From Lepidodermella squamata (lineage: Eukaryota; Animalia; Gastrotricha), in the NCBI GenBank assembly GCA_047495785.1, contig JBLDXI010000028.1:992001-1056000 (forward strand): a stretch of DNA of 64,000 bases, in the 5' to 3' direction. The notes under the pieces are model-generated. The model worked only from the letters and a program-made list of their open reading frames with translations, was not told where the DNA came from and searched no databases. Of this stretch, positions 36,188-56,655 are shown in pieces. The number at the start of each line of letters is the position of its first letter. The stretch's first letter is position 1. The translations under genes and the position numbers were made by a program.

Positions 36188-37843
36188 ATATAAATTTGAG
36201 ACTCCAGCACTAGATTTCAATTAAATATGGTTTTTCGAATTTCTATTCTTCACTAGAATCTCAAATTTTTTGTATCATGCTTAACCGATAGACCTTCACG
36301 TTACATGTATTTCGCGCTATGAGCGGTCAGTTTACGAATTATACTTCAACCTATAGAGCCGATATCGATTCCAAGTATCGATTTGATTTAAAAAATCAGT
36401 GATTTTCCCGATATCAGCCGTCTTTCACGTATCACGTATCACGTAGCTGAAATAAATATCCTACAGGATCAGGGAGGGCATCAGTATCGATCAAAAACCG
36501 AAAACGCCGAAATCGCAAAAAATCTGAAAAATTTAGTGCCAGGAACATTTAGTGCTGGAACCTCATTTTTAGTGGTGGAAATATTTGGACCCTTTACCAG
36601 AGAATTTTATGGATCACGTGCCAGCCAACGGTGTGATCAGGAAATTGCTATTACCTGATACCGCTAGATTTGAGTTTTATCATAATTTTCTCATGAGCTA
36701 ACTAGCTTAGAGGAAAAATGAGTGTTTCACATTTACTCCTCTGCGCCTTAGGGTGATGAATCCTGCAGTAAGGCTCCTTGATGCCGGTCTGGCGCTTACG
36801 CCTTATCAAACCAGACTTTTCCTTGGGACTAATACTGTATGGACTCGACACTGCTGGCATCTCTCCATTAAAATCCTGCTGGACGCAAAAAACCGTCCAA
36901 AAAAGGACTTTTCTATGATAGTGATTTTGCGCGCAGTTGAGAATGCAAAAAAATGACAAGCGTGCGCTTATATCTCTTGCGAGGGGGAGGTATAGGTACA
37001 AAAGTGTGCTTTATTAAGCTTCATTTATCACAAGAGGAATAATGAGTGTTTCACATTTTACTCCTCTGCGCCTTTGTGTGATGAATTCTGCTCCTTAAAG
37101 CCGGTCTGGCCGCTTTCGCCTTATCAAACCATACTTTTCTGTGATAGTGAATTTACACTCTGCTGAGAATGCAACAAATGATAAGCGTTCGCTCATTTCT
37201 CTTGCAAAGGGGAGGTAAAGGAAAAATATACTTTATCAAGCTCATTTATCAACGACAGCAGAAGAGAAAAAATAGTTGACAGTAGTTCTAAGGATTTTCG
37301 AAGGCCCTGATCACGATTTTGAAATCCGTTCGTCTCTATCTATCACCGTTAGGACTGTGTGAAAAGTGCCATATCCGCCCAGCTGATTTCAGGCGATTTT
37401 CGAGCACCCTAATTTTTGTGTCAGCTTTCAGCTTTGGAATTTCAGATTCTAAATTACTTCCATGAAGGTCCCTAACATTCTCCATTCTCCCTCACTTCAC
37501 CGACATCACCGAAAACATTCAGTTTATAACAGTTTTAGAAGCTCAGTATTCAGATCAAGATTTAGTTTCTCCAGTTTTCCCCGTGTTTTTCCTCGCGACA
37601 TTTTTTTAGCACAAAAAATCCGCATTCCGACGCATTCCGCACGCATTCCGACTGTATAAGTCTGGGCGGATATATGGCAATTTCGACTGGTTTGATTCAA
37701 TTTAAATGGAAAATGGAGTAGTCATTTTTTATCAGAAACTTTTTATCAGAAATTAAAATTACACAAGCCAATGAGACTCTATGCCGCCACTGTGGTATTT
37801 TTTATTCGGCGGATAGATGAAGTGACGTCACCTTAATTTAAAA

Positions 37844-38356: not shown

Positions 38357-38704
38357 TTGTAGTCGAAATTTCACACCTCGGTCATCAAATTCAGTAAATT
38401 GAAATGTTGGTGCCCTGTCAAAGTGGAAATTGCCCTTGATTGCAGCAACCAATTGATGTATGATGATCCATAGTGACCGACACGGTTCGGCCATTATTTC
38501 GGTGATAATGTTCATACCCTAAGGCTTAAATCCCCTATAGGCGTACAACTTGCCCTCTTAACGAAATCATTAGTGCTGACAGAAGGAGTTGGATTTTTTT
38601 TCGAGATTTATGAATTGACTAGCCATAATGATGAATTGAATTATATTTCATTCTTCATAGACATATAATAGCAAGGAAAAGTAACCTGTCCGACTAATTC
38701 AAAA

Positions 38705-40081
38705 ATGCTTTCCTGGTTGTTTGGACAGACTTCTCCACTGCTAAACTCAGAAAGAAGTACATGGATTGAACATAGTCTGGAATATGATGCTGAATCGCGT
38801 TCCTCGAATCTGCCCTTGATCGCAAATATTGGCTATGACAGTGAAAAGAAGGTTTTCAAGAAAGTTCAACTATGTTATACGCAGAATAGTTATATGGGAA
38901 TTGCTTATCAGCATTGGTTTATTACTGATGGCGTTAATTTCGTTGAATTCGGTTCCGCCAACTTGAATTACTCCACAGCAAGAGTCAACATCAACACCCT
39001 TCCACGTGACCAATTTTATATTTCGAGAAAGGAAGACATGGATGAAGCAAAACGCGAGCGCTTACGGCATGTCATGGGGATGAAGAACTACTCACTTTGC
39101 CTTCGAAATTGCGAGCACGTTGCCAATTACATCTTTAGAGGGCTTTGGTTCAGCTCTCAGATGGCTGAAGAGGGCGCTTTGATGAAATTCTTTCGTGACT
39201 ATTTCGTCGGTAATTCTAGGCGGTTGATAAATTCGTTTCCTTCAACTATTCGTCCTCATGTGTTTTCGCAAGCGAAAAAGCAACCCGTGTATTCTTTCAT
39301 CACGGAATCTTTCAAAGCAAATGCATTCGATTATTACTTGGATGAAACAGCTAAAACGTTCAATGTTGCGGTGATCGGCCCCACTGGCGCAGGAAAGTCA
39401 AGACTCATCAATGTGTTGTTTAATCACGAAAACTTGAGTAAAAGTGAAGAAAACCTAAAATCTGTCACTCGCGAAGTCTATTTCATCTCCGGCACTGGCG
39501 TAGTCGCGGAATATAATCCTGGTGGACAGGCAAGACATGAAAGTCGAAATGTTATAGTTGCTGATACCGTGGGACTATGTGACACCGACTTTAAGGATGA
39601 GCAAATTATGCAGTTGGTTAAAGGAAGAATTCAGGCTAACATGCGTTACCTTGATGTTGTTATCATAGTTTTCAATAGCCAGGTCCGAATGGAGCAACAA
39701 CATATTAAAAATATTAAACAAGTGCTGGAATGGTTGCAGTACAAAGAGGGTGACAATTGGAAAAGGTTTTTGTTCATTGGTACACATTCAGAGAATTGTA
39801 GCCCGGAAGCAATTGAGCGCCTACGCAGACAATTCATGGAAATATACGAGATTCCCGAGGAGAAATCGCGTTTTGTGGCAGCAGGCGACGGCGAACGCGA
39901 GAGCCAGAATACAGTTATCTTCTCCGGATTTCCACCTGGGGACGAGGAATCAGTTAGCGTTGGCGTTCTTCGACGTGCCAAAGACGATTGGTTAAAAATA
40001 AGAAAGATGTTTGAATATGCAAGACCGGATGCTCCACTGAGTGTCACTCCACCGCGCAACACAATGTGTTCTATATTGTGA
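38705..40081 (+). CDS. LRAT/PLAAT-like (H-NC) domain fused to a GIMAP/AIG1-like GTPase with C-terminal CaaX, copy 1
   Basis: 458-aa intronless ORF: YQHWF (His70), YSLCLRNCEHVANY (Cys136), G1 GPTGAGKS, G2 SVT, G3 DTVG, G4-like THSE, terminal CSIL. Confidence 0.85.
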   Translation: MLSWLFGQTSPLLNSERSTWIEHSLEYDAESRSSNLPLIANIGYDSEKKVFKKVQLCYTQNSYMGIAYQHWFITDGVNFVEFGSANLNYSTARVNINTLPRDQFYISRKEDMDEAKRERLRHVMGMKNYSLCLRNCEHVANYIFRGLWFSSQMAEEGALMKFFRDYFVGNSRRLINSFPSTIRPHVFSQAKKQPVYSFITESFKANAFDYYLDETAKTFNVAVIGPTGAGKSRLINVLFNHENLSKSEENLKSVTREVYFISGTGVVAEYNPGGQARHESRNVIVADTVGLCDTDFKDEQIMQLVKGRIQANMRYLDVVIIVFNSQVRMEQQHIKNIKQVLEWLQYKEGDNWKRFLFIGTHSENCSPEAIERLRRQFMEIYEIPEEKSRFVAAGDGERESQNTVIFSGFPPGDEESVSVGVLRRAKDDWLKIRKMFEYARPDAPLSVTPPRNTMCSIL

Positions 40082-41667
40082 GCTGCTTACCGATTCTCGG
40101 TGCCATTTTTGTTATCCCAGACTTGAAACTAATTCAGTATAAGGCGATATTCACTTTCAACAAATTGCTAGCTTGCGTTGAGTAACTGTCTGTTGAGGCC
40201 TGATAATTTTCTACTTATGCATCATTTCCATTTGAATTGGGTGCTAAAAAGTTACAAATATACAGTAACCAAACAATCAATATTAATGAACTGGAACACT
40301 ATTAACCCTCTAAGGCCGGGAGCGTGTATACTCAAACTACGACTTCTCACCTTGAATTCTCATACTTCTGGATTTTTGCCGGCCAAATGGTTTGGCATAC
40401 GTTTAGATGACCATCTAAATACCCCGATTCCGAAAACCGCAGACTCGCCGCGTTGATTACGTAACACAGGTGAGCGCGCAAATCACGGGCACTCATGCCT
40501 ATTGTGTAAACTCAGGCAAATTTCGACCAAATGACACGGGGGTCGCGCGGGCGGCCTGTTTTGTGTGCATCGGTTCAGTCACCCTGTGTTAATTCAAATG
40601 GCCACTTAAGTTTACTCATGCACATTGTCAATAAATGTTTGATTTCAATTTTTTTACATTTTCTTTTTAAATAAAACTTTTTATGAGTGTGATGAAAAAT
40701 TAAGACACTCGCAGATGCTGCGCAACATAGAATTGCGTAACAACAACAAGCTTTTTACGTTGTTACGTTATAACCATGCAAAATGGAAATAAAAGCGCGG
40801 CTTCGAGTAGAAACATGAGCATCGTCAATATTCATTTACCGAAATTTGCGTCATCCTAACTTTTCGTAACTCATGGATGCGGCTGATAAGCAGCAAGTCT
40901 ACGGCATGGTGGAATCCGATGAGATCGGTTCAACCGATTCCGCGCTCTCGTCATCGGACGATGAACTTGACCGGCCGCTGGCTGACTTCAAGGTGCCTGG
41001 ACAGGTCAAATGGCAAAAGCTGAACGAAGATCGCCAACTTCACATCGAAAAATGCGACCTGAAAAGTCGCCCTACCGACGAATTTGTAACACGAGTCGAG
41101 GCGCTAGGCAAAGGTAGGTATCTAGCCCATACCCATCCGAATTATACTGTAAACGTATTAATTTTCGCGGTATTTTTGAATTCGCGGACGGCCCATTTTC
41201 GGTCATTTTTCATTTTCGCGGATTCTTGAATTCGCGGAGGCAATTTCCGAAAAAGTACCATTTTCGCGTGAGCGAATTTTTCGCGCGCGTGTAATTTTCG
41301 CGGTGATATGAATTCGCGCAAGTGCCGCATCAGTGATTCGCAGAGCCATAGCGCACGCAAATGAACAGGTGCGCTCATGGACCAAACAACAAAGCCTATT
41401 ACGCACATTTGCTCGCGCGGCGAACGCGCGTCCAGGGCGGCGGTTGTCTTTATCGCGGTGTTTGAGGGCGCCGTGTTGTCTGATCGCGATCTTTGATAGA
41501 CACCTTGTCAATCGAGAGCACGCCGTTTGAATTTTATTGGTCCACCCGATGTCCAATAGGAAGCGGCGCGCAGGGTGGCTACGGCGCATGCCGAATTTGT
41601 CGAAAACGTCAAACGTACAGTTCTCGCTCTAATCGCTCTAATTCGCTCTAATACGCTCTAATCGCAA

Positions 41668-43997
41668 ATGAAAACACTCAACGCCTACTTCGCAAGTGTC
41701 CCTAGTCCAAAGGGCGTAATCAAGATCACTCGTGACGACGCGCCCTCGGTGCCGATCACTTCATTGAACGCGGTCAACGACGCTATCTCCGCGCTCTACA
41801 ATGGTAATCCAGCGTCAACGCCGACCGGCAGCCGGAAACGCCCCTCGTCTTACCTGAAAATCTCTGACGAATATCGGCTTAAAATCGCCAAGTTTCAAAT
41901 TAACGGAAGCGCAGCTGAAGCAGCACGCAAGTTTGGTCAAGAGCTCGGTAAGCCGCTCAACGAGTCGACCTGTCGCGGCATCAAGCAGCAATTAGACAAA
42001 AAACTTGCAACCCTCGGCTACGACTTGAGTCAGATCGATTCGCTGCCCAAGGAATCCGGCGCATCTCTTATGATTCCTGACGACACCGATAAAAATATCC
42101 AAATTGTAAGTAACTATTTTTGTTGCTTTTCCCCTTTTTCGTTTGAATAAATTTTCAAATTTGACCGTGAAATTGATGCAAATGAGCAATAATTTTGCTT
42201 TCTTTTCTCTTAGGTCATCGAGAAATTGCGCGAGAAAGGTGCGGTTGTCAACACTTTGGTCGTTCTCTCAATCGCCGAGGCAATCGTTCGCGCCGAGTGC
42301 CCAACGCTACTCATGGGCAAAGGTGGTACCCGCATCAGGCTGACGAAAACGTGGACGCAGAGCCTTTTTCGCCGCATGGGCTACGTAAAGCGCAAGGGTA
42401 CCAAAAGCGCGAAGTCGGATGTGGCGAACAAGGACGAGATCAAGGCGGACTGGTGCCTTCTTGTTCGACGTACTGCCCTTGAGTGCGCCGTTCCGCCTGA
42501 GCTGATAGTTAACTTTGATCAGTTTCCGTCTAAACTAGCTCCGGTTGGCAACTGGACGATGGAGCGGCGAAACTCGAAGCAGGTCAAAATTCATGGCGTC
42601 GATGACAAGCGCGAGATCACCGTCGTTCTCGGCTCAACTATGGCTGGCAGCATTCTGCCGTTTCAGGTTAACTATTTTTTAATTTTTTATTCTCTCGTAT
42701 TTTTGCTGAAGTGACCATACTGCTCGCGCGCAAAATTTTGAATGATTTACCATAGAATCTAGAATATCCACAGCATTTTTTTTTACTTTTTAAACTTTTT
42801 AAACGGTGAAAATTGTATGAAAAATCAAGTTTTCGACGGTGAGGAAGTTCAAGAAACAAATTTGACAGCTAGACAGCGCGTGCTTATGATAAAAATTAGC
42901 GATGAAATAGGGGGAATTAAATCATAATTTTGTTTGTGCGCGCGCTTGTGTGTGCGTGTAAGAGCGCGGAGTTGAGCGCTGCACATGCGCTATTTTTAAT
43001 TAATAAATTTTTTATTTTCATCAACCTAATTACGCGGTTTTGCCTGCAGGTCATTTACGCGGGAAAGACCGAGCGTTGCCACCGTGGACTGGTTTTCCCC
43101 GAAGGTTTCGATGTCACCGAGTCGCCATCTCACTGGTCAGTCGAGCATATGATGAAACGCTAGGTCGTAGAAATTTTGGATCCATATTGCGTCAAAACTC
43201 GCGAGTCGCTCGACCTCCCTCCAGAGCAGCCAGCAATCATCATCCTCGATCATTACGCTTGTCACCTGCAGCCGGAATTCAAGGACTGCTTACGCGAGCA
43301 TCGAATGATACCGATCTATGTTCCTCCCAACCTGACAAGTGAGCTACAACCGGCGGATTTCCTCCTCAATCAATTCGTGAAGAATCGAGTCCGCGACAGG
43401 TACCACGCATGGCACACTGATCAATTTTTCGAAAGTTTTAAGGCGGATGGAGCTAATGCGAAACCAGTTGACACGCTGGCCAGTATCATCAAGCCTCTTC
43501 ATGCTGAATGGCTGGGTGGCGCGTACGCTGACCTGGCTAAGCGACCCGACTTGGTGTTTTCTGCCTGGAAGCGACCGGGAATTTTGTTCAACGAAGTCCC
43601 GTTCGATTTGATCGGCGAGTGCAGCGAGGTAAAAAACGAATTCACCGACAGCGACGACGAGGAGTATGAAAAACCGATCGCTTGCTTCAAAAAGCGCGCC
43701 GTTATTCGCGATTCGCCGACGCCGTCGAATTCTACACCTGTAACGTCAACACCACTTTGGCGGTCGATCACTTCAACGCCTGCTCCGCCTTCCTCGACTC
43801 CACTTCCTTCAACGCCGGTTCCTGTGGCAGAAACAGCACCATCATCGCTTTGCTTCGAGACGGCCGTTTCATCTCAACGGGATGCGAGCGACGAACAGCT
43901 CATCCCAGCAATCGAAGCTAATGTTCTCGCTGAATCGTCTGAACTTCCGTGGTTCGGAGGCACAAACTTCACGAAAACATCGACGCAACAACCATGA
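41668..43997 (+). pseudogene. pogo/Tc2-type DDE_1 transposase (DD35D) with two introns and one in-frame stop, nested in the piggyBac
   Basis: Exons 41668-42105, 42214-42666, 43050-43997; HTH/CENP-B-like N-terminus, VNFDQ, IILDHY and LQPADF catalytic motifs, TAG at 43161-43163. Left end TA|CTGTAAACGTATTAATTTTCGCG at 41147 with TTTTCGCG repeats; no right end found. Confidence 0.85.
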
Positions 43998-44244
43998 CTG
44001 ACGCTTGGAAAGATGGCGGACATTGGCCTCGGCACATCGGCAATTACCCCGGCACTCAGCGCACTCGTATGCGCCAATGTGCGCTATGTGTGGCCACGAA
44101 GCCTCTTGGCAGCCGAATTCCGGCATCAGCCTACGAATGCCAGGTCTGCGACGTTGGGCTGTGCATCGATCCTTGCTTTCGGCAATTCGGACCTCACGCC
44201 GGCTGATTTTTCACCATTTTTATCATGAATAAATGGAAAATATT

Positions 44245-45455
44245 TTTTTAACATCAAATTTACTTTTTTCAACATCAAATTACTTTTTCTATCATCAAAC
44301 TCTTTTTTCAACAGCAAACTTCAGAAATTGTTATTTGATAGGGAAGAATATGCTTTCATGATGATTTCAAGTGATTATGACCTCGGGTGATGATAGCGGG
44401 CCCAGACTCGTACCAATGAGCTAAGGTGGTCATATCCAGAGGTGGAAACAGGTCAGGTTAACCGGCCGGTAAGCTGACCGGTTGCCGGTTGGGTCGGGTC
44501 GCCGGTTAGGTAGTTTCCAGCCGGTTGACCGGTAAACTGGGCTTTTCGGCATGAAAGCAAAACATATAGCGAATTTAACGTGGCTGCGAGACTTCCGCGA
44601 AATGTTCTGAGTAGCACTCGTAGAGAAAGGACGCTATTTTCAACAATCAGGGGTCTGCGCTAATCGATTATTGGATTTTTGGTGATTCATAGTGGTCGGT
44701 GGTCGAAAGACACTTTCAATTATAAAGAGACCTAGCAAACGGTGATGACATCACCTATTGCCTATTTTTATTGTCGCTACATGCGAAAGTCCCTTGGAGG
44801 AAAGTCCGGCTACGAACGATGTCAGTGCCGGGCAAAGTTGCTTCTCGACGGCGAGACATGGGTGCTGATGGCATCCGGGGCGAAGCAGCGTCACAAGACC
44901 ACTTCCCAACTAACGACACCAGTCGAGAAGCGAATAGAGAAAATTTCTATTCGATGGATACTACAATAGAATCGACACATGCCCATGAAAATCTCCATCG
45001 ACATTGACAATGCCCACCCTCAAGAAAGGGAGCGCATGCGTCTATTCAGTGCAGCGCAACGGCGTAAAACGTTCCGGCGGCTAAACCTTGAAGGGCCCTG
45101 ACTAATTTCACTCATTTGAATCATTGTCTTCGCAAAAAAATGAGAATCGTAAAATTATTCGGACAAATATTTAAAAATTCAATTTTTTTGGCCAAAAATC
45201 AAATATTTGTCCGTAACTTTGCAAAATCACAGATAACTCAATTTTACATATTTTTATAAACGGGTTCGACAGCAATAAACTACATTGTTCACCCGAAATG
45301 CTATTTTTCTGTTATTTTTCCGGACTGGTCATTATCAAGGGCTTTAATGAGTGTGGATCGCAAAAATTAACATATCGAAATTTGCTGTTGAAAAAAGAGT
45401 TTAATGATGGAAAAGTAATTTGATGTTGAAAAAAGTAAATTTGATGTTGAATAAA
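44245..45455. mobile_element. Inverted-repeat element family X, copy 1 (inside the piggyBac)
   Basis: About 75-bp inverted repeats (CAACATCAAATTAC / GTAATTTGATGTTG). Related copy at 45866-46822 and a fragment at 56665-56800. Confidence 0.65.
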
Positions 45456-45865
45456 ATGTGACCCGAATAAATGAACTCATTTTGAGTAAATCACATGTTG
45501 ATCAGAGTAATTTTCAGCGCGTCTTGTGTTAACTCAAGTGCGAGTTTTTACAAATAATAAGTGTGAGTAAAGTCAAGTGGGTACTTGTGTATAATCGGTA
45601 TTGAGTGTCGTAAAAATCGCCAATCCAAAATATAACCCCCAAAACTGAGTTCACACATGTTGCAGCTTAGTTAACTCAAAATGAGTGGTTTTTCCCCAAT
45701 GAGTATACTCAAATTGTCAAAACTCAAGACGCTGCCGGCCTTAGAGGGTTAAATTATCTGCCATTTTTAACTCGCTTATCTCTTTTAGGATAAAAAAACT
45801 GTTTCCCGTGTGTTTGACTACTATCATTGTTAAACCACAAAAAATACGATTTGTGAAATAAATGC

Positions 45866-46822
45866 AACATCAAATTACTTTTCCTATCATCAAACTCAAA
45901 TTAGTATTTGATATAGGGAAGAATATACTTTCATGATGAAGTTTTGGATTTTATATGCTTATGACCCCGGGTGATGAAAGCGGGGTCCAGACAATTTTTT
46001 ATGGTCATGTCTATGTGAACACAGGATTGTGTATTGCCTAATGGCTATGCGTACACATCGTATGCGTGATTGGCTACTTGAACACTGCGCGAGTTTAAAT
46101 TTGGCTGTGTGCCACGCACATTCTGTACGCTTAGTACGCTTAGTACCTTCCTCATTGGCTTCACCTATACAAGTGAATCGCCCTTATAGTAATGTTGAGA
46201 ACAAACCCATCCTATAACTGAGAGCAGGCAGAAGATTGAGCCAAAACTGGCAACAAGACATTACACTTTGGTCTTTCAGAAATGAGATTTGGATTTTTGT
46301 TGAGGAACTCGAACCTAGATCCATACTTACTATCCATATTAAGGGATTGCATACAGCGGTTAGCGATTGCTAACATTGTTTTGGGCCAAAGAATCACATA
46401 TGCTTCACACCTCCGCTTGTGGCTGGGGCGCAGCCACTGCAGTGCATGATTCAGTGCAGCGCAACGGCGTCGAAAGCGTTACGGCGGCTTAACCTTGACT
46501 AATTTCACTTATTTGAAAAAAAAACGAGAATCGTAAAATTACTGGGACGAATAATATTCAAAAAATTAATTTTGTTGGCCAAAAATCAAATATTTGTCCG
46601 TAACTTTGCAAAATTACAACAAAGTCGATTTTCTATTATTTTATGAGGGGGTTCGACAACAATAAATTACATTCTCCCCCAGAATTTCCTGTTATTTTCT
46701 CGGACTGGGCATCATCAAGGGCTTTGAGGAGAGTGGGTCGCAAAATTTAACATAGGTATCGAAATTTGCTGTTGAAAAAAGAGTTTGATGATAGAAAAAG
46801 TAATTTGATGTTGAATAAAATG
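45866..46822. mobile_element. Inverted-repeat element family X, copy 2
   Basis: Shares both arms with 44245-45455 but has an unrelated middle. Confidence 0.65.
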
Positions 46823-47559
46823 TAACTTAAAGAATGAAATAAGAGCAACGAAACGACAGCGAATATATATCGTCTTTATTATAATAATAATATAATAATA
46901 TCTGGTAAATAATAATTGGTGCCCTCGGGCTGGTATTGGCGTCTCGGGGTACTTGGACACCTTTGGCGTCGCGGTAGGAGTGCTAAAGACAAGGATGTTA
47001 TTACTCGCGCTGTGATTATTCGAGTGGCATTGAATCGATTCGTCGAGAATTGTTCATGGAATGCAGCCGTACTTTGACCGATCAATTTAGCATGACAACG
47101 TGCACAAAATTCCACGACCACGCGACCACGCCCGTAATTTTAATGATGAAAATCCAGCAATTAATCACAATTAAAAAAACCGCCCATTTTACGCCATCTC
47201 GCGAGGTCTAGGGTCTAGGGTAAATTATTGTAAAACTCACAAATTCGATGCGTGAAATTTCATCCGAAGAATATTACCCTAAGTTATCGACGATGTTTCT
47301 TTTTATTACTCGAGGCGCGTTGCTGAAAACGTGTATTGCCCTGCTATTGTATGCGCGCGCGACTGTGACTACAACGGTACTGTCGCTCCGCGGATTTGTA
47401 AAACTGCCACGCGACAAATAAAATGTCGCGCGCGATTTTGTCGCCGCTGTCGCAGATTAGTGAATCCAGCTTAACTAGCTTAGAGGAATAATGAGTGTTT
47501 CACATTTTACTCCTCTGCGACTTTGTGTGATGAATCCTGCTCCTTGAAGCCGGTCTGGC

Positions 47560-47955
47560 CATGAGACGTACTGTAGGACTGGCCATAAGCTGAGAATCTG
47601 AAAAAGTGTGATATTTTTAATGAGGTCCAAAGTCCAACTCGACCAATGAATCATCTCATTACACTTTTTGCAATCATCTCAAGCCTCTTTTTTGCTTAAG
47701 ATCAACGAGATCAACACATCTTTACACAGCGTCACGCCGATCTTTTGCTGTAAAAGAATTCTCATCAGTTTTTAATTATTGACATTTAAAAAATTAAAAT
47801 TTTATAAATTAAAATTTCTTTAATTTCGAAATTTTACTGGACTAAAATTTAATTCGTATGCACATTCCGATATGCACAGTCCGCGGCCTTCAAGAGGCCC
47901 ATGTAACGGGAGTGCATGAGCTTCGAAGCCGCGGCGTCCTATAGTACGTCTCATG
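47560..47955. mobile_element. P/hAT-type MITE
   Basis: Inverted repeats CATGAGACGTACT; 8-bp duplication GGTCTGGC; empty site in unit 1 at about 37103. Confidence 0.92.
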
Positions 47956-48627
47956 GGTCTGGCCGCTTTCGCCTTATCAAACCATACTTTTCTGTGATAG
48001 TGAATTCACACTCTGCTGAGAATGCAACAAATGATAAGCGTTCGCTCATTTCTCTTGCAAAGGGGAGGTAAAACAAAAATATACTTTATTACGCTCATTT
48101 ATCAACGACAGCAAAAGAGAAACAATTGTTCACAGTAGTTCTAATGATTTTCGAAGGCCCTGATCACGATTTTGAAATCCGTTTGTCTCTATCACCGTTA
48201 GGACTATGTGAAAAGTGCCATATCCGCCCAGCTGATTTCAGGCGATTTTCGAGCACCCTGATTTCTGTGTCAGCTTTGTTCAGCTTTGGAATTTCAGATT
48301 CTAAATTACTTCCATGAAGGTCCCTAACATTCTCCCTCACTTACATCACCGAAAACATTCAGTTTATAACAGTTTTAGAAGCTCAGCATTCAGATCAGGA
48401 TATAGGGCGCTTTCGACCGCTTTGATTTAACTTGAATGGAGTAGGGTAAAGTGACCTAATGTGTCATAATTTCGCTTACTTTTTTTCGAGGCCCGATATC
48501 TACTCACCTGAGGGGTCCCGGCCCGATTTTGTTTGACAGGGACCTCAGTTAGGGTCTTGGCTTCGATAATCCGTCGAAAAAATTCGACCCCGATGCCTAT
48601 TGTAAGTGTGGCAGGAGGTGTTGTGAC

Positions 48628-49095
48628 CTTGGAGGAATAGTAATGGAGTGAGCACTGCCCTATTAACGAGATCGTATCGTGCACACGACGGGGGGCCCGC
48701 CGCCTGCCTCACTCGCGCGCACGAGATGAGGAAACAACTGCACGTTGGTACCATTTTTTCGTCAATTTTAAAGATATTGAGCTGTGCTTTAGAATATAGG
48801 TAGATAGTAGAAACCGAGACGCGTCCCTACATCTAAAAATTATTGAATTCTGACCCAGGATTGCGGAGTAACGGGAAAAATAAGTGAGCGCCTGTGCTTT
48901 TGCCTACATCAAAAAACGGTATCGATGCGACGTACGGTTGCTGAGCAATCGCGCATCAAAGTTTTAAAAAATGTGCGCGCGTTTGGAGTCACGTGAGCAA
49001 GAACAATGCGGGCGCCCTGCTGCGCACTCAGACTTTGTCCAACGATAGTGCGCGCTGATAAAGAGCAGTGCTCACTCCATCTCTATTCCTCCAAG
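48628..49095. mobile_element. Nested P/hAT-type MITE
   Basis: CTTGGAGGAATAG...CTATTCCTCCAAG with 8-bp duplication GTTGTGAC. Confidence 0.88.
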
Positions 49096-49140
49096 GTTGT
49101 GACGCAAGAGACTGATTATGACAAATTTAGGAGCCGGCGC

Positions 49141-50411
49141 CTATTTCGTCATAATTTTTCGACCAACGGTCCTAATTGTCATAATGGGGTCTAGAGTTAT
49201 TTTTTTGACCTGCCGTTATAGGATTAGGTGAATCGAGGCCGGCGGATTCGATTCTGATGTTCAAACAGTACCTTCATCAGTCAAAAATTTTTGTTTTTGC
49301 CAAATCCGTATCTTGGTCTAGTTTTTATTTCAAATTTCCCATCTTGCTTGACGTGCTCATGCCAGTAGCCATGTCAATGTCCGGGTAATGAACCAGATGG
49401 GTTTTAGCTCTAGCTGTATATCAGAATAATGCATAAATGTTAATTTTTCTAGGGGCCCAATGGTGGCTCGTATGGGCGGCTGCATCTATGCCTTAAATTG
49501 CCAAAATGTGTTTTCTTTCGGAATTTCCAGCCGAGTTTTTGTCATTCTTAAACCATCATAAGGCCATCTAAAGCTCATATATCACTCCTACTATAGTTTG
49601 ATGAGCTCATTAACGAACTTCTGGGACCAATTCAAAGCTAATATTGATCTAGCAGATCTGGTAAGATTGATTAGATGTGAGAATGAATGGCAAAATGAGT
49701 TTTAGTTCGTCTGAGTATAATCGATAAGTCTACGGAAATATTGCCAAATCTAACTGGTTGGCTCCTCTACCATGGTAAGCTGATGCCATCCGTCATCAAA
49801 ATTTACGTTAAGATCGAGGCAGAATCGAAAAATGTGGATCTTAGTGCACTCGATAGGTACAGTTTTATTTGCGGTTTCACTAGTTTCGAGATAGCGCCAT
49901 AGGATCATTTCCGAACAATACCAACTTGACATGGTCGGCCTCTGCTAGCCAGGGATGCCCCAAAGAATTCCTGATACCGAATTAAGCTGTTCGAGATCGA
50001 AATTAGGCATATTAGATGACCTATTAAGCCTTAATTAGTGTTAGGAAACTAGGCCAAGGCCATTCGGCATGTACAGCATGCATAGGAGCCTATTTTCATG
50101 ACAGCTAAACAGAAATTGCACTCTGACCAGAGCATTTTAGTTGAAGGGTCACCACATTACTACGAATTGGAAGAAATTTCCTAAAAATTGTGCTTCCGAC
50201 CGGGAAAAAGCAGTAAAATTGGATTAAAAACAACATAGAGCATTAAGTGGTCGCAAAATCTTGACAACAGTTAATTTTTGAATGATTTGAATATAAGAAT
50301 CGAATCCGCCGGCCTCGATTCACCTAATCATTATAACGGCAGACCAAAAAAATAACTCTAGACCTCATTATGACAATTAGAACCGTTGGTCGAAAAATTA
50401 TGACGAAATAG
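49141..50411. mobile_element. Nested foldback element
   Basis: About 115-bp inverted repeats CTATTTCGTCATAATTTTTCG...; target duplication ambiguous. Confidence 0.82.
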
Positions 50412-50538
50412 AGTTGCGTTTTTTATGGTGTCCACGGGCTAATTATATAAATTAGGACCAGATGACACACATAACTTAACTTATGCTTTTACAAGCAATC
50501 GTTAGACTTTAAATTCAGAAATATTGATCTACGGGTTG

Positions 50539-51623
50539 GGTACCATGACATAAGGGCGCGGATAAAAGCGCGAAAGACATAAGGGCGCCGGACATAAGGG
50601 CGAAAGGCAAAAGAGCGCCGGACAAAAGGGCGAAAGACCGAAGAGCGCGGACAAAAGGGCGCCTGGACAAAAGGGCGCCTGATTTTTATGTATAACGAAG
50701 GCCTATTAGTTATTATTTTTTAAAACGATGGCTTTGCGACGCTTTTAGAGGAAACTAATTGTTTTACAATGCGGAGTGTTGGCAAATATAACCCCTTCGC
50801 GAACCAGGTTCATCCCCAGGTCGATTTACCGGCTGATCGACGAGCGCCTTAGAGCCCTAGTCCCATTACAGGATAACCTGTTTGACTTTGAAAACCTAAT
50901 CTCTAATTTAGACGCCATTTGGCATGTGCTAGATGATTAATTTTCGATTCGAATGACCTTGTGCTAAATGATTTAATTTATTCAGTCATTGATTGAAAAT
51001 GGTTTGCTTCTCTTGCATGATAATAAATATCAATCACGTAGATTTTAGGGTTTTATCATAACTTATTTTGCTTATTTTGCCTTCGGAAACCTTATAAAAT
51101 CTTATAAAACTCACAATCGCATCAATTTCCGATTGCAGCATTACTATCAAGTTTTACAACTGTGTTACTATAGGTATTTTCAATTTTCATGAACAAATCT
51201 ATAGGTAATGAGTATAACAAAAATGACAAATAAGTAACTGAATAACTGAATTCATCAAAAAGTTCAACCTGCCCCAGTCAATCCTACCTGACATTGTCAT
51301 TTCAGTAATTAAGGACTCATGCAAAATAATTAATAACCACCTGTACAACAAGTAATTGTTAAACGTAAATACCCGTGTCTTTAGGCAATCTGATACTTAG
51401 TATTGGACGGAACATTGATTTTTAAATAAACAACTACTAAAAGTAATTGGTAATTTTATCTGGCGCCCTTATGTCCTGCGCCCTTTTGTCTCGGCGCCCT
51501 TTTGTCTTGATGTAGCGCCCTTATGCCCTCGCGCCCTTTTGTCCGGCGCCCTTTCGTCTTTCGCTCTAAAGTCGGCGCCCTTATGTCTGCGCGCTTATGT
51601 CTGCGCCCTTATGTCCTACCACG
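50539..51623. mobile_element. Nested MITE with AAGGGCGC subterminal arrays (Mutator-like)
   Basis: 8-bp duplication ACGGGTTG; inverted arrays of GACA(T/A)AAGGGCG. Confidence 0.85.
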
Positions 51624-52068
51624 ACGGGTTGTTTAGCAAGCTTGGATTCAAAATAATCGCCCATTGACAGTTAAAATTGAGAATTTTCGGTAAATTTCGA
51701 AAAATTTCAAAAAATCAATATTTCTCTCAATTTTTTCGGATCGTGCCAACGAAATAGAAATGCTTCCCCACGACGTTTGGCTATAAATTGACCGTATGGC
51801 ACGTCGTCATAAATTAACGAGGGTCAGATGGCGCTATGGAGTAAATTAATTACAACCATGTCTCGATTTGTCAAGGCTTAATCTAATCAAGTCGGGGCGT
51901 GATTAGTCTAAACTGTTTGCCTCTCGAGCTCGGACAGCTCCAGTCTAATTACTTGATTGTTATTTCTGTGTTGCGGAGGTGTTCGAAGAATTGATCACAA
52001 CGTCGAACAATAGCTTTCCGGACACCATAAAAAACGCAACTTAGGCGCCGGCTCCTAATTTGTCATAA

Positions 52069-52960
52069 GGTAGATGGTGACATGCGCCCAGAATTTTGCG
52101 CCCAGCGTGTTTGCGCCCACAAAAATGCGCCCCGACTTTTGCGCCCTGACTACTGCACCCATAAATTTACGCCTTGACATTTGCGCCCCGACTTTTGCGC
52201 CCTTACAGTATGCGCCCTGACATATGCGCCCCGACCTTTGCGCCCAGTGTTCTTTCCGCTTTGCCAATGGCTACTGTTTCATGGTGCTCATATCTGCGAG
52301 ATGTTAGTTAATTTCATGTTACCATGGAGGAGTACAATTTTGAAAGGTAAAAGTTTTTTCCACTACATGGCATACCTGCGGTTGACTTCCTAAAATTCTG
52401 GAAAAATATCTAAAAAATATCTTGGCTCCTGTAGAATACGGCTATCGATTTTGTTTCCCCGATTCGATTCCATTATTGACTGCTGATTTTTTGGAATCGA
52501 ACCTTCGATAACCCTAAAATCACCTCTCTGGATCCCTTCACCTGGGTGGTTTTTTATTAAATATCTGAAAAGTCTAATACAAAAGTCATAAAATGACTGC
52601 GTTTTCCATTAATGAGCACGCTTGAAGGTGCATCGACTTTTCGCCAACACAGAACTATAGAATAAGAAAATAATTTTCAGGTATATCTTCTTTAATCACA
52701 GATCAGGTATTTGGTGAACAGCCAGTTCATATTAGGATTATATGATTAGGAGAACACAGTTTTCTTCCAACAAACAAATCTCGGGGCGCAAGTGTCAGGG
52801 CGCAATTATCAGGGCGTAAAAATACGGGGCGCAAAATTCGGGGCGCAAATGTCAAGGCGCTTGAATCTGGGCGCAAATGTCGGGGCGCAAAAGTCAGAGC
52901 GCATTTTTGTGGGCGCAAACACGCTGGGCGCAAAAAACTGGGCGCATGTAACTACAATTC
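52069..52960. mobile_element. Nested MITE with TTGCGCCC subterminal arrays (Mutator-like)
   Basis: 8-bp duplication TGTCATAA (52061-52068, 52961-52968); inverted repeat arrays. Confidence 0.85.
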
Positions 52961-53040
52961 TGTCATAATCGGTCTCTTGCGTCACAACACCTGTTGCCAC
53001 ACTTACAATAGGCATCGGGGTCGAATTTTTTTGACGGATT

Positions 53041-54376
53041 CGTCGTTTTTACACGACGGAGGGGTACGGAGGCACTCGTTAATTACATCTGTTGCTATCA
53101 TCTATTTAGCGGCTCTGTTAAGACAAATTTTGATTACGCAATTAAATAGTTTCAGAAAATTGAATGTTGATTTTTTCCGAAGCGTCAAGAAAGCAATTTC
53201 AAAAAGAAATTTTTAAAAATATATTTCTTTCTTAATTGGTACTTCAAAGTTATTTTTACTAGTAGCCTCAATTATTATTCGAATATTTCGACACGTTGAA
53301 ATGGAATTTTTGATCAAATTTACAAATTTTGCCATTTGCCAGTCGGAAATTTGATCAGCAAAAGAATATTCGGCTATCAACCTCAACGTCGAAAATTGTT
53401 TAAAATTGCTTCAGGTGATTTAGATAGCCGTCGATTGAGAATTTTGTCCTATTGTAACTCCGGGACACTCCGAGACGTGTTTATAATTTCCTAAAATTAT
53501 TTAGAATTTTAGAAAATTATAAACACGTCCCGGAGTGTCCGGAGTTTGCGCAAACTTTTTTTAATTTTGCAAGTTTTTGGACGCAATTTCGGAAAAAAAT
53601 TCCTAGAGAATATTTGATTCTTCATCCGCGATTTTACCGAATAAATTTAAAATTTTAGCGGAGAAAACCCGAAAAACTCCGATTTTAACTGTTACGGTAA
53701 TTTTGACTAAGGTATTTTACCCGGTTGGACCCCTTTCCCGGTTGGAATTATTGTCAACTCATTGACAAGTGACATACTTGCTTACTATTCTCATGACATT
53801 TTGAATTTTTCTAAGATTTTTCTGCCCATGCGATATGAATTTACGTCGCATTTTAGATATTCGTCAACTATTTATCCCTGTGTTTCTATGTTTGATTATG
53901 GCTTATAGTACACGGTTCATTGCCTATAGGGTGATTAATCGTCACCAATTTAAAAAAAATATGAAAAACGAAAACATCGCCGCGGCCTTCAAGAATAGCA
54001 TTACGTGACTCATATTGACGGTAAATACAAATTTTGATCACATTTGATAGTCAAAATATTCTTTACTTCGGTGACATTCAAAAAATGATTTTTTGTTTTT
54101 CCATGGCTTAAATTTCGAGGGCCATAACCACGATAATTGATTTTCAGGTGGCTTAAGTTGATGCAAACCCAGCCTAATAATGCTTTATGTACTATCGACT
54201 GATTTTTCCCTGAAAAAATAACGGCGGGATTTTTATGCTGAAAACAAATTAAACATTAAAAATTTGCTTTTTCGTGAAAGCTCAGTTGCGTAATCAAACC
54301 AGAGCCTCGAAATAGGGGTGGCAACTGATGGCATTAACGAACGCCTCCGTAACCCTCCGCTATTGTAAAAACGACG
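53041..54376. mobile_element. Nested inverted-repeat element without a target duplication
   Basis: CGTCGTTTTTACA...TGTAAAAACGACG with about 40-bp imperfect inverted repeats; internal hairpin at 53457-53546. Confidence 0.75.
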
Positions 54377-54770
54377 ACTGAGGTCCCTGTCAAAAAAAAT
54401 CGGGCCGGGACCCCTCAGGTGAGTAGATATCGGGCCTCGAAAAAAAGTAAACGAAATTATGACACATTAGGTCACTTTACCCTAGTCATTTTTCATCAGA
54501 ATTTCGTAAAAAAAAATTGCACACAAGTCACTATGCCCGACACTGAAGTATTTTTTGTTTGGCCGATTGATGAAGTGACGACACCTTGATTTAAGATTAG
54601 AAAAAGTCGAAATTTCAAGGAGATTTCACACTTCGGTTGTCAAATTCATCAAACTGAAATTTTGGAGCACTGTCGAAGTCGAAATTCCGAAATTGCCCTT
54701 CCCGCCGTGAAAGGGTTAAAAGGTATGTATTAGAAGATTTAAGCTTATACGGCATAGGCTTAAGGCTTAA

Positions 54771-55123
54771 GGCTATACGGAATAAGCGATATTTTCAATT
54801 GCCATATAGTGGCCGAACCGTAAGGGTCGCTATGGATCATCATATATCAATCGATCGCTGTAATCAAGGAATTTCGATTAATGTCCGATCGAATTCCACG
54901 CGGTACATTCAGGGTGACGTTTTTGGCCAAAAGACGCGAATGTTGCGCATTTCATTCAACTTCGAAGGCAAAATCATATTCCCAAAAGTCCACGCGGAAT
55001 TCGATCGGGCACCTATCGATTGCCCTTGATTACAGCAACCAATTGATGTATGATGATCCATAGTGACCCTCACGGCTCACGGTTCGGCAATTATTTCGGT
55101 GATAATGCTCATACCCTAAGGCT
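54771..55123. mobile_element. Old PIF/Harbinger-like MITE upstream of the fusion gene
   Basis: 54811-54875 is an inverted copy of 55020-55090; TAA at both ends; only the right half survives in unit 1 (38430-38530). Confidence 0.55.
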
Positions 55124-55281
55124 TAAATCCCCTATAGGCGTACAACTAGCCCTCTTAACGAAATAATCATTAGTGCTGACAGAAGGAGTTGGATTTTTGG
55201 CGAGTTTTATTAATTGAATTATATTTCATTCTTCACAGGCATATAATAGCAAGAAAAAGTACCTGCCTGACTAATTCAAAA

Positions 55282-56655
55282 ATGTTTGCCGGGTTGTTAG
55301 GAAAGTCTTCTCCACTGCTAGAATCAGAAAAGAGGACATGGAATGAACATAGTCTGGAATTTGATGCTCAATCGCGTTCCGCGAATCTGCCCTTGATCGC
55401 AAATTTCGGCTATGACAGTGAAAACAAGGTTTACAAGGCAGTTCAACTATGTTATACGGTGGCTAGTTATATGGGTATTACTTATCAGCATTGGTTTATT
55501 ACTGATGGCGTTAATTACGTTGAATTCGGTTCCGCCGCCTTGGATTACTCCACAGCAAGAGTCAACATCAACACCCTTCCACATGGCGAATTTATTATTC
55601 CGAAAGAGGAAAGCATGGATGAAGCAAAACGCGAGCGCTTACGGCATGTCATAGGGATGAAGAACTACTCACTTTGCCTTCGAAATTGCGAGCATGTTGC
55701 CAATTACATCTTTAATGGGCATTGGTACAGCTCTCAGCTGGCCGAAAATGGCGCTTTGATGCGATTCTTTCGTAACTGTTTCGCCGGTGATTCTAGACTG
55801 TTGATAAATTCGTTTCCTTCAAGTATTCGTCCTCATGTGTTTTCGAAAGAGAAAAAGCAACCCGTGTATACTTTCATCACGACATCTTTCAATGCTAACC
55901 GATTCAACTATCACTTGGATGAAACAGCTAAAACATTCAATGTTGCGGTGATCGGCCCCACTGGCGCAGGAAAATCTCGACTCATCAATGTGTTGTTTAA
56001 TCACGAAAACTTGTGTAAAAGTGAAGGATCCTTCAAATCTGTCACTCGCGATGTCTATTTCATCTCCGGCACTGGCGTAGTCACGGAATATGAAGGCAAC
56101 AATCCTGAGGGAGAGGCAAGACTTAAAGGTCGACAGGTTATAGTTGCTGATACCGTGGGACTATGTAACACCGACTGTTCAGATGAGCAAGTTATGCAGT
56201 TGGTTAAAGGAAGAATTCAGGCCAACATGCGTTACCTTGATGTTGTAATCATTGTTTTTAAAGGCCAGGTCCGAATGGAGCAACAGCATATTAGAAACAT
56301 TAAACAAGTGCTGGAATGGTTGCATTACAAAGAGGGTGACAATTGGATGAGGTTTTTGTTCATTGGTACTCACACAGAGAATTGTAACCAGGAAGCAATT
56401 GAGCGCCTACGCAGTCAATTCATGGAAATATTCGAGATTCCGAAGGAGAAAACTTGTCGATTTGCCGAGCGTTTGGTGGCAGCAGGCGAGGGCTGGACTG
56501 AAAGTAAAATCGAGGGCCAGAATACAGTAATCTTCTCCGGATTTCCACCTGAGGACTCAGTTAGCGTTGGCGCCCTTCGACGTGTCCACAACGATTGGTT
56601 ACGAATAAGAAAGATTTTTTGTTATGCAGGACTGAGTGCTCCACTGAAAGTATGA
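55282..56655 (+). CDS. LRAT/PLAAT-like plus GIMAP/AIG1-like GTPase fusion, copy 2 (no CaaX)
   Basis: ATG at 55282 aligns with the copy 1 start; YQHWF, NCEHV, GPTGAGKS, DTVG and THTE all retained; ends SAPLKV*. Confidence 0.85.
   Translation: MFAGLLGKSSPLLESEKRTWNEHSLEFDAQSRSANLPLIANFGYDSENKVYKAVQLCYTVASYMGITYQHWFITDGVNYVEFGSAALDYSTARVNINTLPHGEFIIPKEESMDEAKRERLRHVIGMKNYSLCLRNCEHVANYIFNGHWYSSQLAENGALMRFFRNCFAGDSRLLINSFPSSIRPHVFSKEKKQPVYTFITTSFNANRFNYHLDETAKTFNVAVIGPTGAGKSRLINVLFNHENLCKSEGSFKSVTRDVYFISGTGVVTEYEGNNPEGEARLKGRQVIVADTVGLCNTDCSDEQVMQLVKGRIQANMRYLDVVIIVFKGQVRMEQQHIRNIKQVLEWLHYKEGDNWMRFLFIGTHTENCNQEAIERLRSQFMEIFEIPKEKTCRFAERLVAAGEGWTESKIEGQNTVIFSGFPPEDSVSVGALRRVHNDWLRIRKIFCYAGLSAPLKV

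Follow-up and report, generated by a model that had tools for sequence, protein, structure and literature searches.

The stretch of DNA analysed here, referred to below as the window, comprises 64,000 nucleotides from the gastrotrich Lepidodermella squamata (assembly GCA_047495785.1, contig JBLDXI010000028.1, positions 992,001 to 1,056,000 of the forward strand). It contains two long open reading frames (ORFs) that each join an LRAT/PLAAT-like domain to a GIMAP-type GTPase. Taken together, the evidence leans somewhat towards reading these two ORFs as paralogs in a widespread, uncharacterised family of GTP-controlled, lipid-anchored LRAT-like enzymes. The two genes are located as follows.

38705–40081, + strand: copy 1, the complete fusion gene of 458 amino acids, with an ATG start, an LRAT-like domain, a linker, a GIMAP-type GTPase, a C-terminal helix and a CaaX box.
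55282–56655, + strand: copy 2, the paralog of 457 amino acids, which has all the catalytic and GTPase motifs but in which the final 11 residues of copy 1, CaaX box included, are missing.

That the ORFs arose by chance is excluded because full-length homologues reach E = 6e-115. The mechanically called ORF of copy 2 opens at a TTG at 55189, and the ATG that aligns with the start of copy 1 lies at 55282. The two proteins are 76% identical. Both contain, as checked by translation, the motifs YQHWF (His70), VEF (Glu81), NYSLCLRNCEHVANY (Cys136), SSQ, GPTGAGKS, SVT, DTVG and TH[S/T]E; copy 1 ends in CSIL and copy 2 in APLKV, without a CaaX box. A first-pass annotation, made from the letters alone, had reported the two ORFs, these motifs and the CSIL ending of copy 1, and all of these were recovered here at the same positions. 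The domains and sites of copy 1 are distributed along the gene in the following order.

38705–39154, + strand: residues 1–150, N-terminal helices and a permuted NlpC/P60 (LRAT-like) core, assigned from Pfam LRAT matches in 32 of 33 relatives, fold matches and conservation.
38912–38914, 38945–38947 and 39110–39112, + strand: proposed site residues His70, Glu81 and Cys136, to which Tyr129 is added, from conservation and the motif check.
39155–39349, + strand: residues 151–215, a linker with invariant columns and the motifs WxSxQ, NxFPSxIRP and YYLD.
39350–39940, + strand: residues 216–412, a G domain of the GIMAP/Toc/septin class, from Pfam, profile comparison with the PDB and Foldseek.
39377–39400, 39563–39574 and 39782–39793, + strand: the G1 (GPTGAGKS), G3 (DTVG) and G4 (THSE) motifs, with G2 at Thr255 and the conserved-box Arg at position 328.
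40067–40078, + strand: the CaaX box CSIL, whose X is Leu, a geranylgeranyl-type signal of the kind used by geranylgeranyltransferase I.

In its N-terminal half each protein carries a circularly permuted NlpC/P60 domain, one of the LRAT/PLAAT kind. The Pfam LRAT profile (PF04970, gathering cut-off 24.3 bits) is found at E<=1 in the N-domains of 32 of 33 relatives, the best match having an E of 5e-7, and two of the relatives, P0029 (30.4 bits) and P0024 (27.1 bits), exceed the cut-off; another Pfam family, Peptidase_C97, is touched by three N-domains. When a profile of the N-domain was compared with the PDB, HRASLS2 was returned at E 0.19, with the NCEH and YSL motifs of the family aligned to it. 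An otoferlin C2 match that ranked above it (E 0.01) was set aside as spurious, and a single-sequence search of copy 1 against the PDB gave P-loop noise only. Sequence alone was insufficient for this domain, and fold comparison was therefore used. Since Foldseek with a full-length AlphaFold2 (AF2) model (predicted local distance difference test score, pLDDT, 80.5; predicted template-modelling score, pTM, 0.79) gave GTPases only, the N-domain was folded apart, as an AF2 model of residues 1–205 with a pLDDT of 76.9. The best Foldseek matches of this model were parechovirus 2A, H-REV107/PLAAT3, PLAAT4 and Aichivirus 2A. Exhaustive comparison with VIA-align gave Z scores of 5.8 for Aichivirus 2A, 5.3 for PLAAT4 (model residues 52–146 against chain residues 9–123), 5.2 for PPPDE/DUF862, 4.5 for YiiX, 4.3 for CLN5, 4.2 for TseH, 3.4 for BcPPNE and 2.2 for RID. 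The highest VIA match, at Z 6.2, was 8iuf_E7, a chain of a Euglena respiratory supercomplex. A shape search of the ESM Atlas returned, beyond the family's own cluster, LRAT clusters (TM up to 0.60 by target over 108 residues), DUF3750, YaeF/YiiX and PPPDE, and the three nearest clusters in a language-model search all carry LRAT. The hit lists are coherent, consisting largely of permuted papain-like NlpC/P60 proteins, though each score is modest.

Conservation points to the same kind of site. The site of the permuted NlpC/P60 enzyme BcPPNE is made up of Cys154, His49 and Glu64 plus a Tyr, and the order His70, Glu81, Tyr129, Cys136 in the family is that of the BcPPNE site (PMC3142127). Among 95 full-length members, His70 is kept in 92 and Glu81 in 88, and the nucleophile position holds Cys in 70 members and Ser in the other 25. 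In alignment A1, an unfiltered set of 34 sequences, Asn135 and Glu137 do not vary; Tyr129 is at least 90% conserved. Ahead of the core lies a helical extension (residues 11–39, 38735–38821) in which Glu16, Trp20 and His23 are near-invariant (88–91 of 95) and which has no counterpart in the matched range of PLAAT4; these helices could serve as a lid, contribute an extra site residue or contact the GTPase.

The C-terminal half is a GTPase of the GIMAP/Toc/septin class. On Pfam searching, MMR_HSR1 matches the G domain over its cut-off, at 38.7 bits. A profile built from 34 family members and compared with the PDB gave GIMAP4 (4.5e-9) and GIMAP7 (6e-9), followed by septins, GIMAP5 and Toc33/34; in these alignments Arg328 faces the Arg of the "LGRYT" conserved box of GIMAP4 and GIMAP7, and G4 faces "TRKD". 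Foldseek with the full-length model returned Toc34 (2.2e-9), GIMAP7 (8e-9), Toc33, GIMAP2 and GIMAP5, within a range of 2e-9 to 4e-7. Asp287 and Gly290 are present in all 95 full-length relatives and Thr255 and Arg328 in 89 each, with G4 taking the form [TN]xx[DE]; the P-loop Lys231 is present in all 95 by construction, the set having been chosen for it. GTPases of the GIMAP/Toc/septin class work through nucleotide-dependent dimers with an arginine finger, which in the dimers of GIMAP7 and Toc34 is the conserved-box arginine. The linker that joins the two halves is partly of low confidence in the model, with pLDDT values of 51–57 at residues 171–190. Both domain assignments of the first-pass annotation are thus upheld: its AIG1/GIMAP-like GTPase by MMR_HSR1 and by the GIMAP and Toc structures at the top of the comparisons, and its LRAT/PLAAT branch of permuted NlpC/P60 enzymes by the relatives' Pfam matches and by the fold, ESM Atlas and language-model searches. 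The AlphaFold- and Foldseek-type check that it proposed gave LRAT/PLAAT, 2A, YiiX and PPPDE folds for the N-domain model.

Signals for lipid anchoring recur across the family. A Cys occupies the CaaX position in at least 90% of aligned relatives; 81 of the 95 members have a CaaX box, and in 68 the final residue is Leu. An MG start, typically MGxxxS, is present in 56 members and both lipid signals in 51. The CaaL ending from which geranylgeranylation had been predicted for copy 1 is therefore a conserved feature of the family, with the reservation that copy 2 has lost its prenylation signal.

The family is both larger and older than the window would suggest. A full-length search found 49 relatives with 30–50% identity, from the nematode Acrobeloides, the springtail Folsomia, the fungus gnats Bradysia, the bdelloid rotifer Adineta and many metagenome contigs, and the contigs with homologues have eukaryote-type neighbour genes. 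With the N-domain profile, a scan of 1.84 billion representatives yielded 364 clusters (counted at 50% identity), 247 of them at E<=1e-10, and further sources included the chytrid Cladochytrium, the dinoflagellate Symbiodinium, EukProt protists and a marine metatranscriptome. The members of most clusters are 410–470 amino acids long, and the longer clusters that were tested also have AIG1 after the N-domain. Most of the shorter N-domain matches stop in or before the P-loop region and are fragments or frameshifts, and a few that stop earlier are unclassifiable. Among the 364 profile clusters there was no clear case of a stand-alone N-domain without the GTPase, so the N-domain appears to be tied to the GTPase. 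A quick tree, with SH-aLRT (approximate likelihood-ratio test) support only, splits the members into two clades, one holding the named animals and one the protists and the chytrid, and sets the springtail next to the gnats; an old family with patchy retention fits this tree better than recent horizontal spread does.

Most relatives have a precomputed PF04548 (AIG1) match and only 2 of the 49 a precomputed LRAT match. Public labels read "AIG1" or "GTPase IMAP family member", the Folsomia protein for example being named "GTPase IMAP family member 4"; because these labels name only the AIG1/GIMAP half, the enzyme half has gone largely unnoticed. No paper describing an LRAT/PLAAT and GIMAP/AIG1 fusion, or named invertebrate homologues of it, was found in the literature searched. 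Neither domain is new; it is the conserved fusion, with its conserved lipid-anchor signals, that is undescribed in that literature. The first-pass annotation did not recognise the architecture as a characterised family, which agrees with this result. The architecture is not special to one genome, however, and the search across eukaryotes that the annotation had proposed found the fusion in animals, a chytrid, a dinoflagellate and protists, as a large old eukaryotic family.

Some members depart from the common layout. P0176 from Cladochytrium tenue has 1335 amino acids, P0112 and P0133 from EukProt have 828 and 803, and P0120 from Symbiodinium has 603; such extra-long members carry about 350 more N-terminal or about 900 more C-terminal residues, and in P0120 a zf-FPG_IleRS finger precedes the LRAT-like domain. 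In Adineta ricciae the homologue is a single ORF of 449 amino acids, found in tandem at 1075–2424 and 10001–11350 of L002 with a period of about 8.9 kb, and the tandem unit also holds a 735-amino-acid ZZ-domain gene on the opposite strand. One apparent member, P0050 (a metagenome protein of 2756 amino acids with 43 matched stretches), is an artefact, being a translated 165-bp satellite whose unit resembles TWxxHxLxxD by chance.

These features suggest how such a protein might work. The ancestral design would have had a lipid anchor at each end, an N-myristoylation-type MGxxxS start and a geranylgeranyl-type CaaX box, the dual anchoring being proposed because most relatives also start with MGxxxS. 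The protein, presumably geranylgeranylated, would sit on the cytosolic face of a membrane, where its G domain would dimerise or oligomerise with GTP and thereby position or release the LRAT-like domain. The latter would form an acyl-enzyme on a membrane glycerophospholipid and then hydrolyse or transfer the acyl chain, as PLAAT enzymes do. Of the two window copies, copy 1 is complete and carries a prenylation signal, without the Gly2 myristoylation start, and copy 2 is a 3′-truncated duplicate without any lipid-anchor signal.

Copy 1 also appears to be transcribed. Contigs from X1, a small public run, tile 38724–40597 with no gaps and no splice joints and with almost nothing on either side; X1 depth rises from about 38626 and is zero after about 40680. 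A second run, X2, covers the whole 3.4 kb evenly, as DNA would. With the run type of X1 taken as RNA by guess, copy 1 appears to give an unspliced transcript with a short 5′ untranslated region (UTR) and a 3′ UTR of about 0.5 kb. The first-pass annotation had called the ORFs intronless, which fits two single unbroken ORFs and gap-free X1 contigs across copy 1, and had held that a lack of expression would count against its proposal; copy 1 is apparently transcribed, subject to the same guess about X1. The segments that flank the two ORFs are the following.

38429–38704, + strand: upstream segment of copy 1, duplicated with the gene and part of one blastn alignment with the ORF; it probably holds the promoter and a short 5′ UTR for this gene, and a TATA-like ATATAATAG lies some 45 nt ahead of the start codon.
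40082–40600, + strand: probable 3′ UTR of copy 1, about 0.5 kb, from the extent of the X1 contigs.
55019–55281, + strand: upstream segment of copy 2, homologous to 38429–38704.
56647–56655, + strand: end of the similarity between the copies, with the copy 2 stop codon directly after and a repeat family from 56670.

By blastn the duplication is a single block of 1.6 kb with 86% DNA identity (38429–40040 against 55019–56647). It takes in about 270 bp upstream of the gene, and the similarity ends 41 nt before the stop codon of copy 1; copy 2 reaches a stop 8 nt past this breakpoint. A DNA comparison of the region downstream of copy 2, up to 59500, found no remnant of the tail or 3′ UTR of copy 1. 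The N-termini read MLSWLFGQ in copy 1 and MFAGLLGK in copy 2, and copy 1 has five extra residues ahead of the family's Gly2 position.

Change between the copies is unevenly distributed. The ratio of non-synonymous to synonymous substitution (dN/dS), estimated for the two sequences by the Nei-Gojobori method, is 0.93 for the whole gene, 0.44 for the G domain (residues 216–365), 2.2 for residues 1–71 and 3.67 for residues 46–150, where 2 synonymous changes stand against 28 non-synonymous ones. The contrast in these counts between residues 46–150 and the G domain is significant by Fisher's test (p = 0.004), and residues 1–150 differ from neutrality at p = 0.035. The upstream non-coding segments, 38429–38704 and 55019–55281, are 94.9% identical at aligned positions (farther upstream the sequence is unrelated, at 66%), compared with 89.6% for the first 150 codons. 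The N-terminal domain has therefore changed in amino acids faster than either neutral yardstick would give, dN/dS being above 1 and upstream identity being higher than coding identity.

Several observations weigh against our reading of the family as GTP-controlled, lipid-anchored LRAT-like enzymes, or against the results built around it. The window copies themselves score below the LRAT cut-off (14.9 and 15.9 bits for the whole proteins, 16.2 for the N-domain alone), with E values of 0.016–0.03 and matches confined to the NCEH helix; every LRAT match in the family spans only profile positions 66–118. AIG1 (PF04548) scores 25.4 and 24.3 bits in the two copies, just under its gathering cut-off of 27. 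Single fold matches of the N-domain are weak, with Foldseek E values of 0.04–0.5 and Z scores below 8. Ser replaces the nucleophilic Cys in a quarter of the family, and the LRATD/FAM84 proteins, which belong to the LRAT family, are considered inactive. With Gly2 absent from both window copies and the CaaX box from copy 2 as well, the dual-anchor model does not fit them as it stands. The RNA nature of X1 is a guess, its run type not being on record. A concern about the selection signal is that it comes from two sequences, with 4 synonymous and 43 non-synonymous changes. In addition, dS is 0.03–0.07 in the 5′ half and 0.18–0.21 in the 3′ half, which suggests a mosaic history, for example through gene conversion, that complicates the selection test.

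The role that such proteins might play is a separate question. The first-pass annotation proposed an immune effector, a prenyl-anchored, GTP-gated lipase or protease acting on pathogen-containing or damaged membranes, and the form of this proposal that we weighed has lipid anchors recruiting the protein to such membranes and GTP-driven assembly switching on a membrane-degrading LRAT-like domain, in effect a PLAAT-type lipase joined in one chain to an analogue of prenylated GBPs or myristoylated IRGs. This is a possible explanation that we hold only tentatively. It is in keeping with the GIMAP class of the G domain, with CaaX(L) and MGxxxS signals that resemble those of GBP2/5 and Irga6, with the dN/dS above 1 in the N-terminal domain and with the tandem duplication in Adineta ricciae. 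A family that is old and broadly eukaryotic, with two clades that roughly follow lineage, would fit a cell-biological role equally well, and vertebrate GIMAPs themselves do not for the most part attack membranes but regulate autophagy and the survival of lymphocytes (PMC8201404). A role in conflict is plausible, on indirect evidence, in that it would fit both the N-terminal amino-acid change and the repeated local duplication, here and in Adineta, and it is the least secure part of our interpretation. We are more doubtful of the broader proposition that the whole family is an unrecognised class of cell-autonomous defence effectors, in which a dual-lipid-anchored, GTP-switched PLAAT-like lipase with an enzyme domain in an arms race would destroy pathogen-containing or damaged membranes from protists to invertebrates, and paralogs without an anchor, copy 2 among them, would serve as regulators or decoys. 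As to the first-pass interpretation as a whole, its domain classes, its CaaL signal and the missing literature precedent have stood; what has changed is that the architecture is more widespread, that most relatives also have an N-myristoylation-type start and that copy 2 has lost its anchor.

The observations on spread that count against an immune role can be turned into a different explanation, which we likewise regard as doubtful. The proteins might be housekeeping enzymes without any role in defence, either GTPase-timed remodellers of phospholipids or organelle-degrading lipases, on the pattern of PLAAT3, which clears lens organelles, or of GIMAP6 in autophagy. The wide eukaryotic spread, with named animals in one clade and protists and the chytrid in the other, and the strong conservation of catalytic and G motifs would be expected of such enzymes, and permuted NlpC/P60 enzymes are in general found at membranes and are described as having hydrophobic S1 pockets and partners that target them to membranes (PMC3142127). 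Against this, retention is patchy, the named sources being only a nematode, a springtail, gnats, a bdelloid, a chytrid, a dinoflagellate and protists, and lineage-specific paralogs together with a dN/dS above 1 in the enzyme domain would be unusual for a core housekeeping enzyme.

The same excess of amino-acid change could, in principle, have a trivial origin if copy 2 were a decaying pseudogene under relaxed constraint after the loss of its CaaX tail. The last 11 residues, CaaX included, are indeed gone, the whole-gene dN/dS is 0.93 and the neighbourhood is rich in transposon remains. We nevertheless consider this unlikely, since the 457-codon ORF is intact at a dS of 0.13 and relaxation alone cannot raise the N-terminal dN/dS above 1. 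Of the 103 columns in which at least 80% of relatives agree, 8 depart from the consensus in copy 1 and 11 in copy 2; the copies have 8 of these departures in common, and 3 are private to copy 2. The copies differ from each other at 96 positions, of which 93 are family-variable columns and 3 conserved ones. The G domain keeps its dN/dS of 0.44, and the terminal branches of the two copies in the tree are equal, at 0.13 and 0.14. Because copy 2 keeps the conserved core, it is easier to see it, as judged from its sequence, as a soluble variant or a partner than as a dead gene.

The LRAT-like domain might also have no catalytic function and serve to bind lipids or proteins, a role that has been suggested for LRATD proteins and certain picornavirus 2A H/NC proteins, in which case the whole protein would be a membrane-anchored GTPase scaffold. 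The 25 members with Ser at the nucleophile position lend this some credit, as do the viral 2A proteins among the closest folds, which are not known to have enzyme activity. The near-complete retention of His70 and Glu81, the invariance of Asn135 and Glu137 in A1 and the conservation of Tyr129 make a non-catalytic domain quite improbable, however, and the Ser forms still have the His in 22 of 25 and the Glu in 21 of 25, as expected if Ser is an alternative nucleophile. Less probable again is that the substrate is a protein, the domain acting on itself or on a partner GTPase as a thiol peptidase, as a de-acylase (depalmitoylase- or deSUMOylase-like, compare PPPDE and CLN5) or as a protein N-acyltransferase (compare MARTX RID). 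PPPDE/DUF862, CLN5, TseH and RID are all among the fold matches, and the three N-domains that touch Peptidase_C97 would agree with such an activity, but the YQHW, NYSL, NCEH and SxQ motifs and the best sequence matches are of the LRAT/PLAAT type, a branch known for lipid acyl transfer. Horizontal transfer or carriage on a transposon, considered as the main explanation in view of the patchy taxa, the absence of introns and the many transposon remains nearby, was rejected because the homologue contigs look eukaryotic, the GC content is like that of the surroundings, no inverted repeats bound the gene and the quick tree groups the members as described above.

The flanking genes are ordinary animal genes with long exons, encoding Cep120, a WD40 protein, Mff, LDL-receptor class A repeats, a UDP-glycosyltransferase and FOXRED1, and the GC content is uniform at about 40%. 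The FOXRED1 orthologue (62374–63981, + strand) is a single ORF of 535 codons whose best named matches are from molluscs and annelids at 44–49% identity, with one metagenome contig at 68%; by this measure the host is a spiralian-like invertebrate that has no near relative among the proteins searched. The 16.6 kb between the copies are rich in transposon remains. At 41668–43997 (+ strand) lie three ORFs in different frames, of which only the last matches a DDE_1 (pogo/Tigger-type) transposase, at E 8e-6; they represent a DNA transposon that has decayed in the interval separating the fusion genes. A pair of foldback arms resembling a miniature inverted-repeat transposable element (54806–55078) has 89-nt arms that are 81% complementary and 86 nt apart, and because its right arm corresponds to the first ~65 nt of the duplicated unit (38429–38497), the left edge of the duplication lies inside a repeat. 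Two 111-nt inverted repeats at 48439–48549 and 54377–54487, which lie 5.8 kb from each other and are 97% complementary, could mark the termini of a mobile element immediately upstream of copy 2. Direct-repeat pieces with 93–96% identity, at 37033–37565 upstream of copy 1 and 47482–48405 between the copies, form no part of the gene duplication.

PLAAT/LRAT enzymes remodel or destroy membranes, and GTPases of the GIMAP class are tied to immunity, cell survival and autophagy by mechanisms that are unclear. If the GTPase controls the lipid enzyme in the family described here, it would offer a natural single-chain system for how a GIMAP-type switch acts at a membrane, and a new kind of effector for invertebrate and protist cell biology. 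Members are present in culturable organisms, namely bdelloid rotifers, springtails, fungus gnats and a cephalobid nematode.

Among known systems, the PLAAT/H-REV107 (HRASLS) and LRAT enzymes of PF04970 have the same permuted topology with the His before the Cys and the same YQHW, NYSL, NCEH and SxQ motifs, and PLAAT3, PLAAT4 and PLAAT2 are fold matches to the family's N-domain. They also face the cytosol while held at a membrane, which for our family is predicted from its lipid-anchor signals. In PLAAT enzymes the third site residue is a His. The family instead has a Glu at this position, as do YiiX-type and viral permuted enzymes (PMC3142127), and it differs further in its conserved N-terminal helical extension of 50 residues. 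Anchoring is a further difference, as the family has no C-terminal transmembrane helix: a linker and a GTPase follow the enzyme domain, and the anchoring signals are of the lipid type (in the window, the CaaX box of copy 1 only). PLAAT1–4 and LRAT, by contrast, carry a C-terminal transmembrane anchor.

The picornavirus 2A proteins of parechovirus, Aichivirus and Ljungan virus resemble the family in their H-box and NC motifs and give the best Foldseek and VIA folds to the N-domain, at 16–20% identity; unlike the family, these small viral proteins stand alone and have neither a GTPase nor lipid-anchor signals. The prenylated GBPs (the CaaX boxes of GBP1/2/5) and the myristoylated IRGs (MGxxxS in Irga6) offer a functional analogy only, as GTPases that carry such signals and assemble on target membranes: they belong to other GTPase classes, dynamin-like and IRG, have no enzyme domain and share only the P-loop fold, with weak matches. 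The GTPase half is closest in kind to GIMAP/AIG1 proteins (GIMAP2, 4, 5 and 7), Toc34/Toc33 and septins, with which it has in common G1 to G4 and the conserved-box Arg between G3 and G4, and the solved GIMAPs are 12–15% identical to the family's G domain in structural alignments. As in GIMAP/AIG1 proteins, a C-terminal helix is followed by a membrane anchor, here predicted from the CaaX box; unlike in those proteins, this anchor is a CaaX box rather than a transmembrane helix, and an enzyme domain is fused to the N-terminus.

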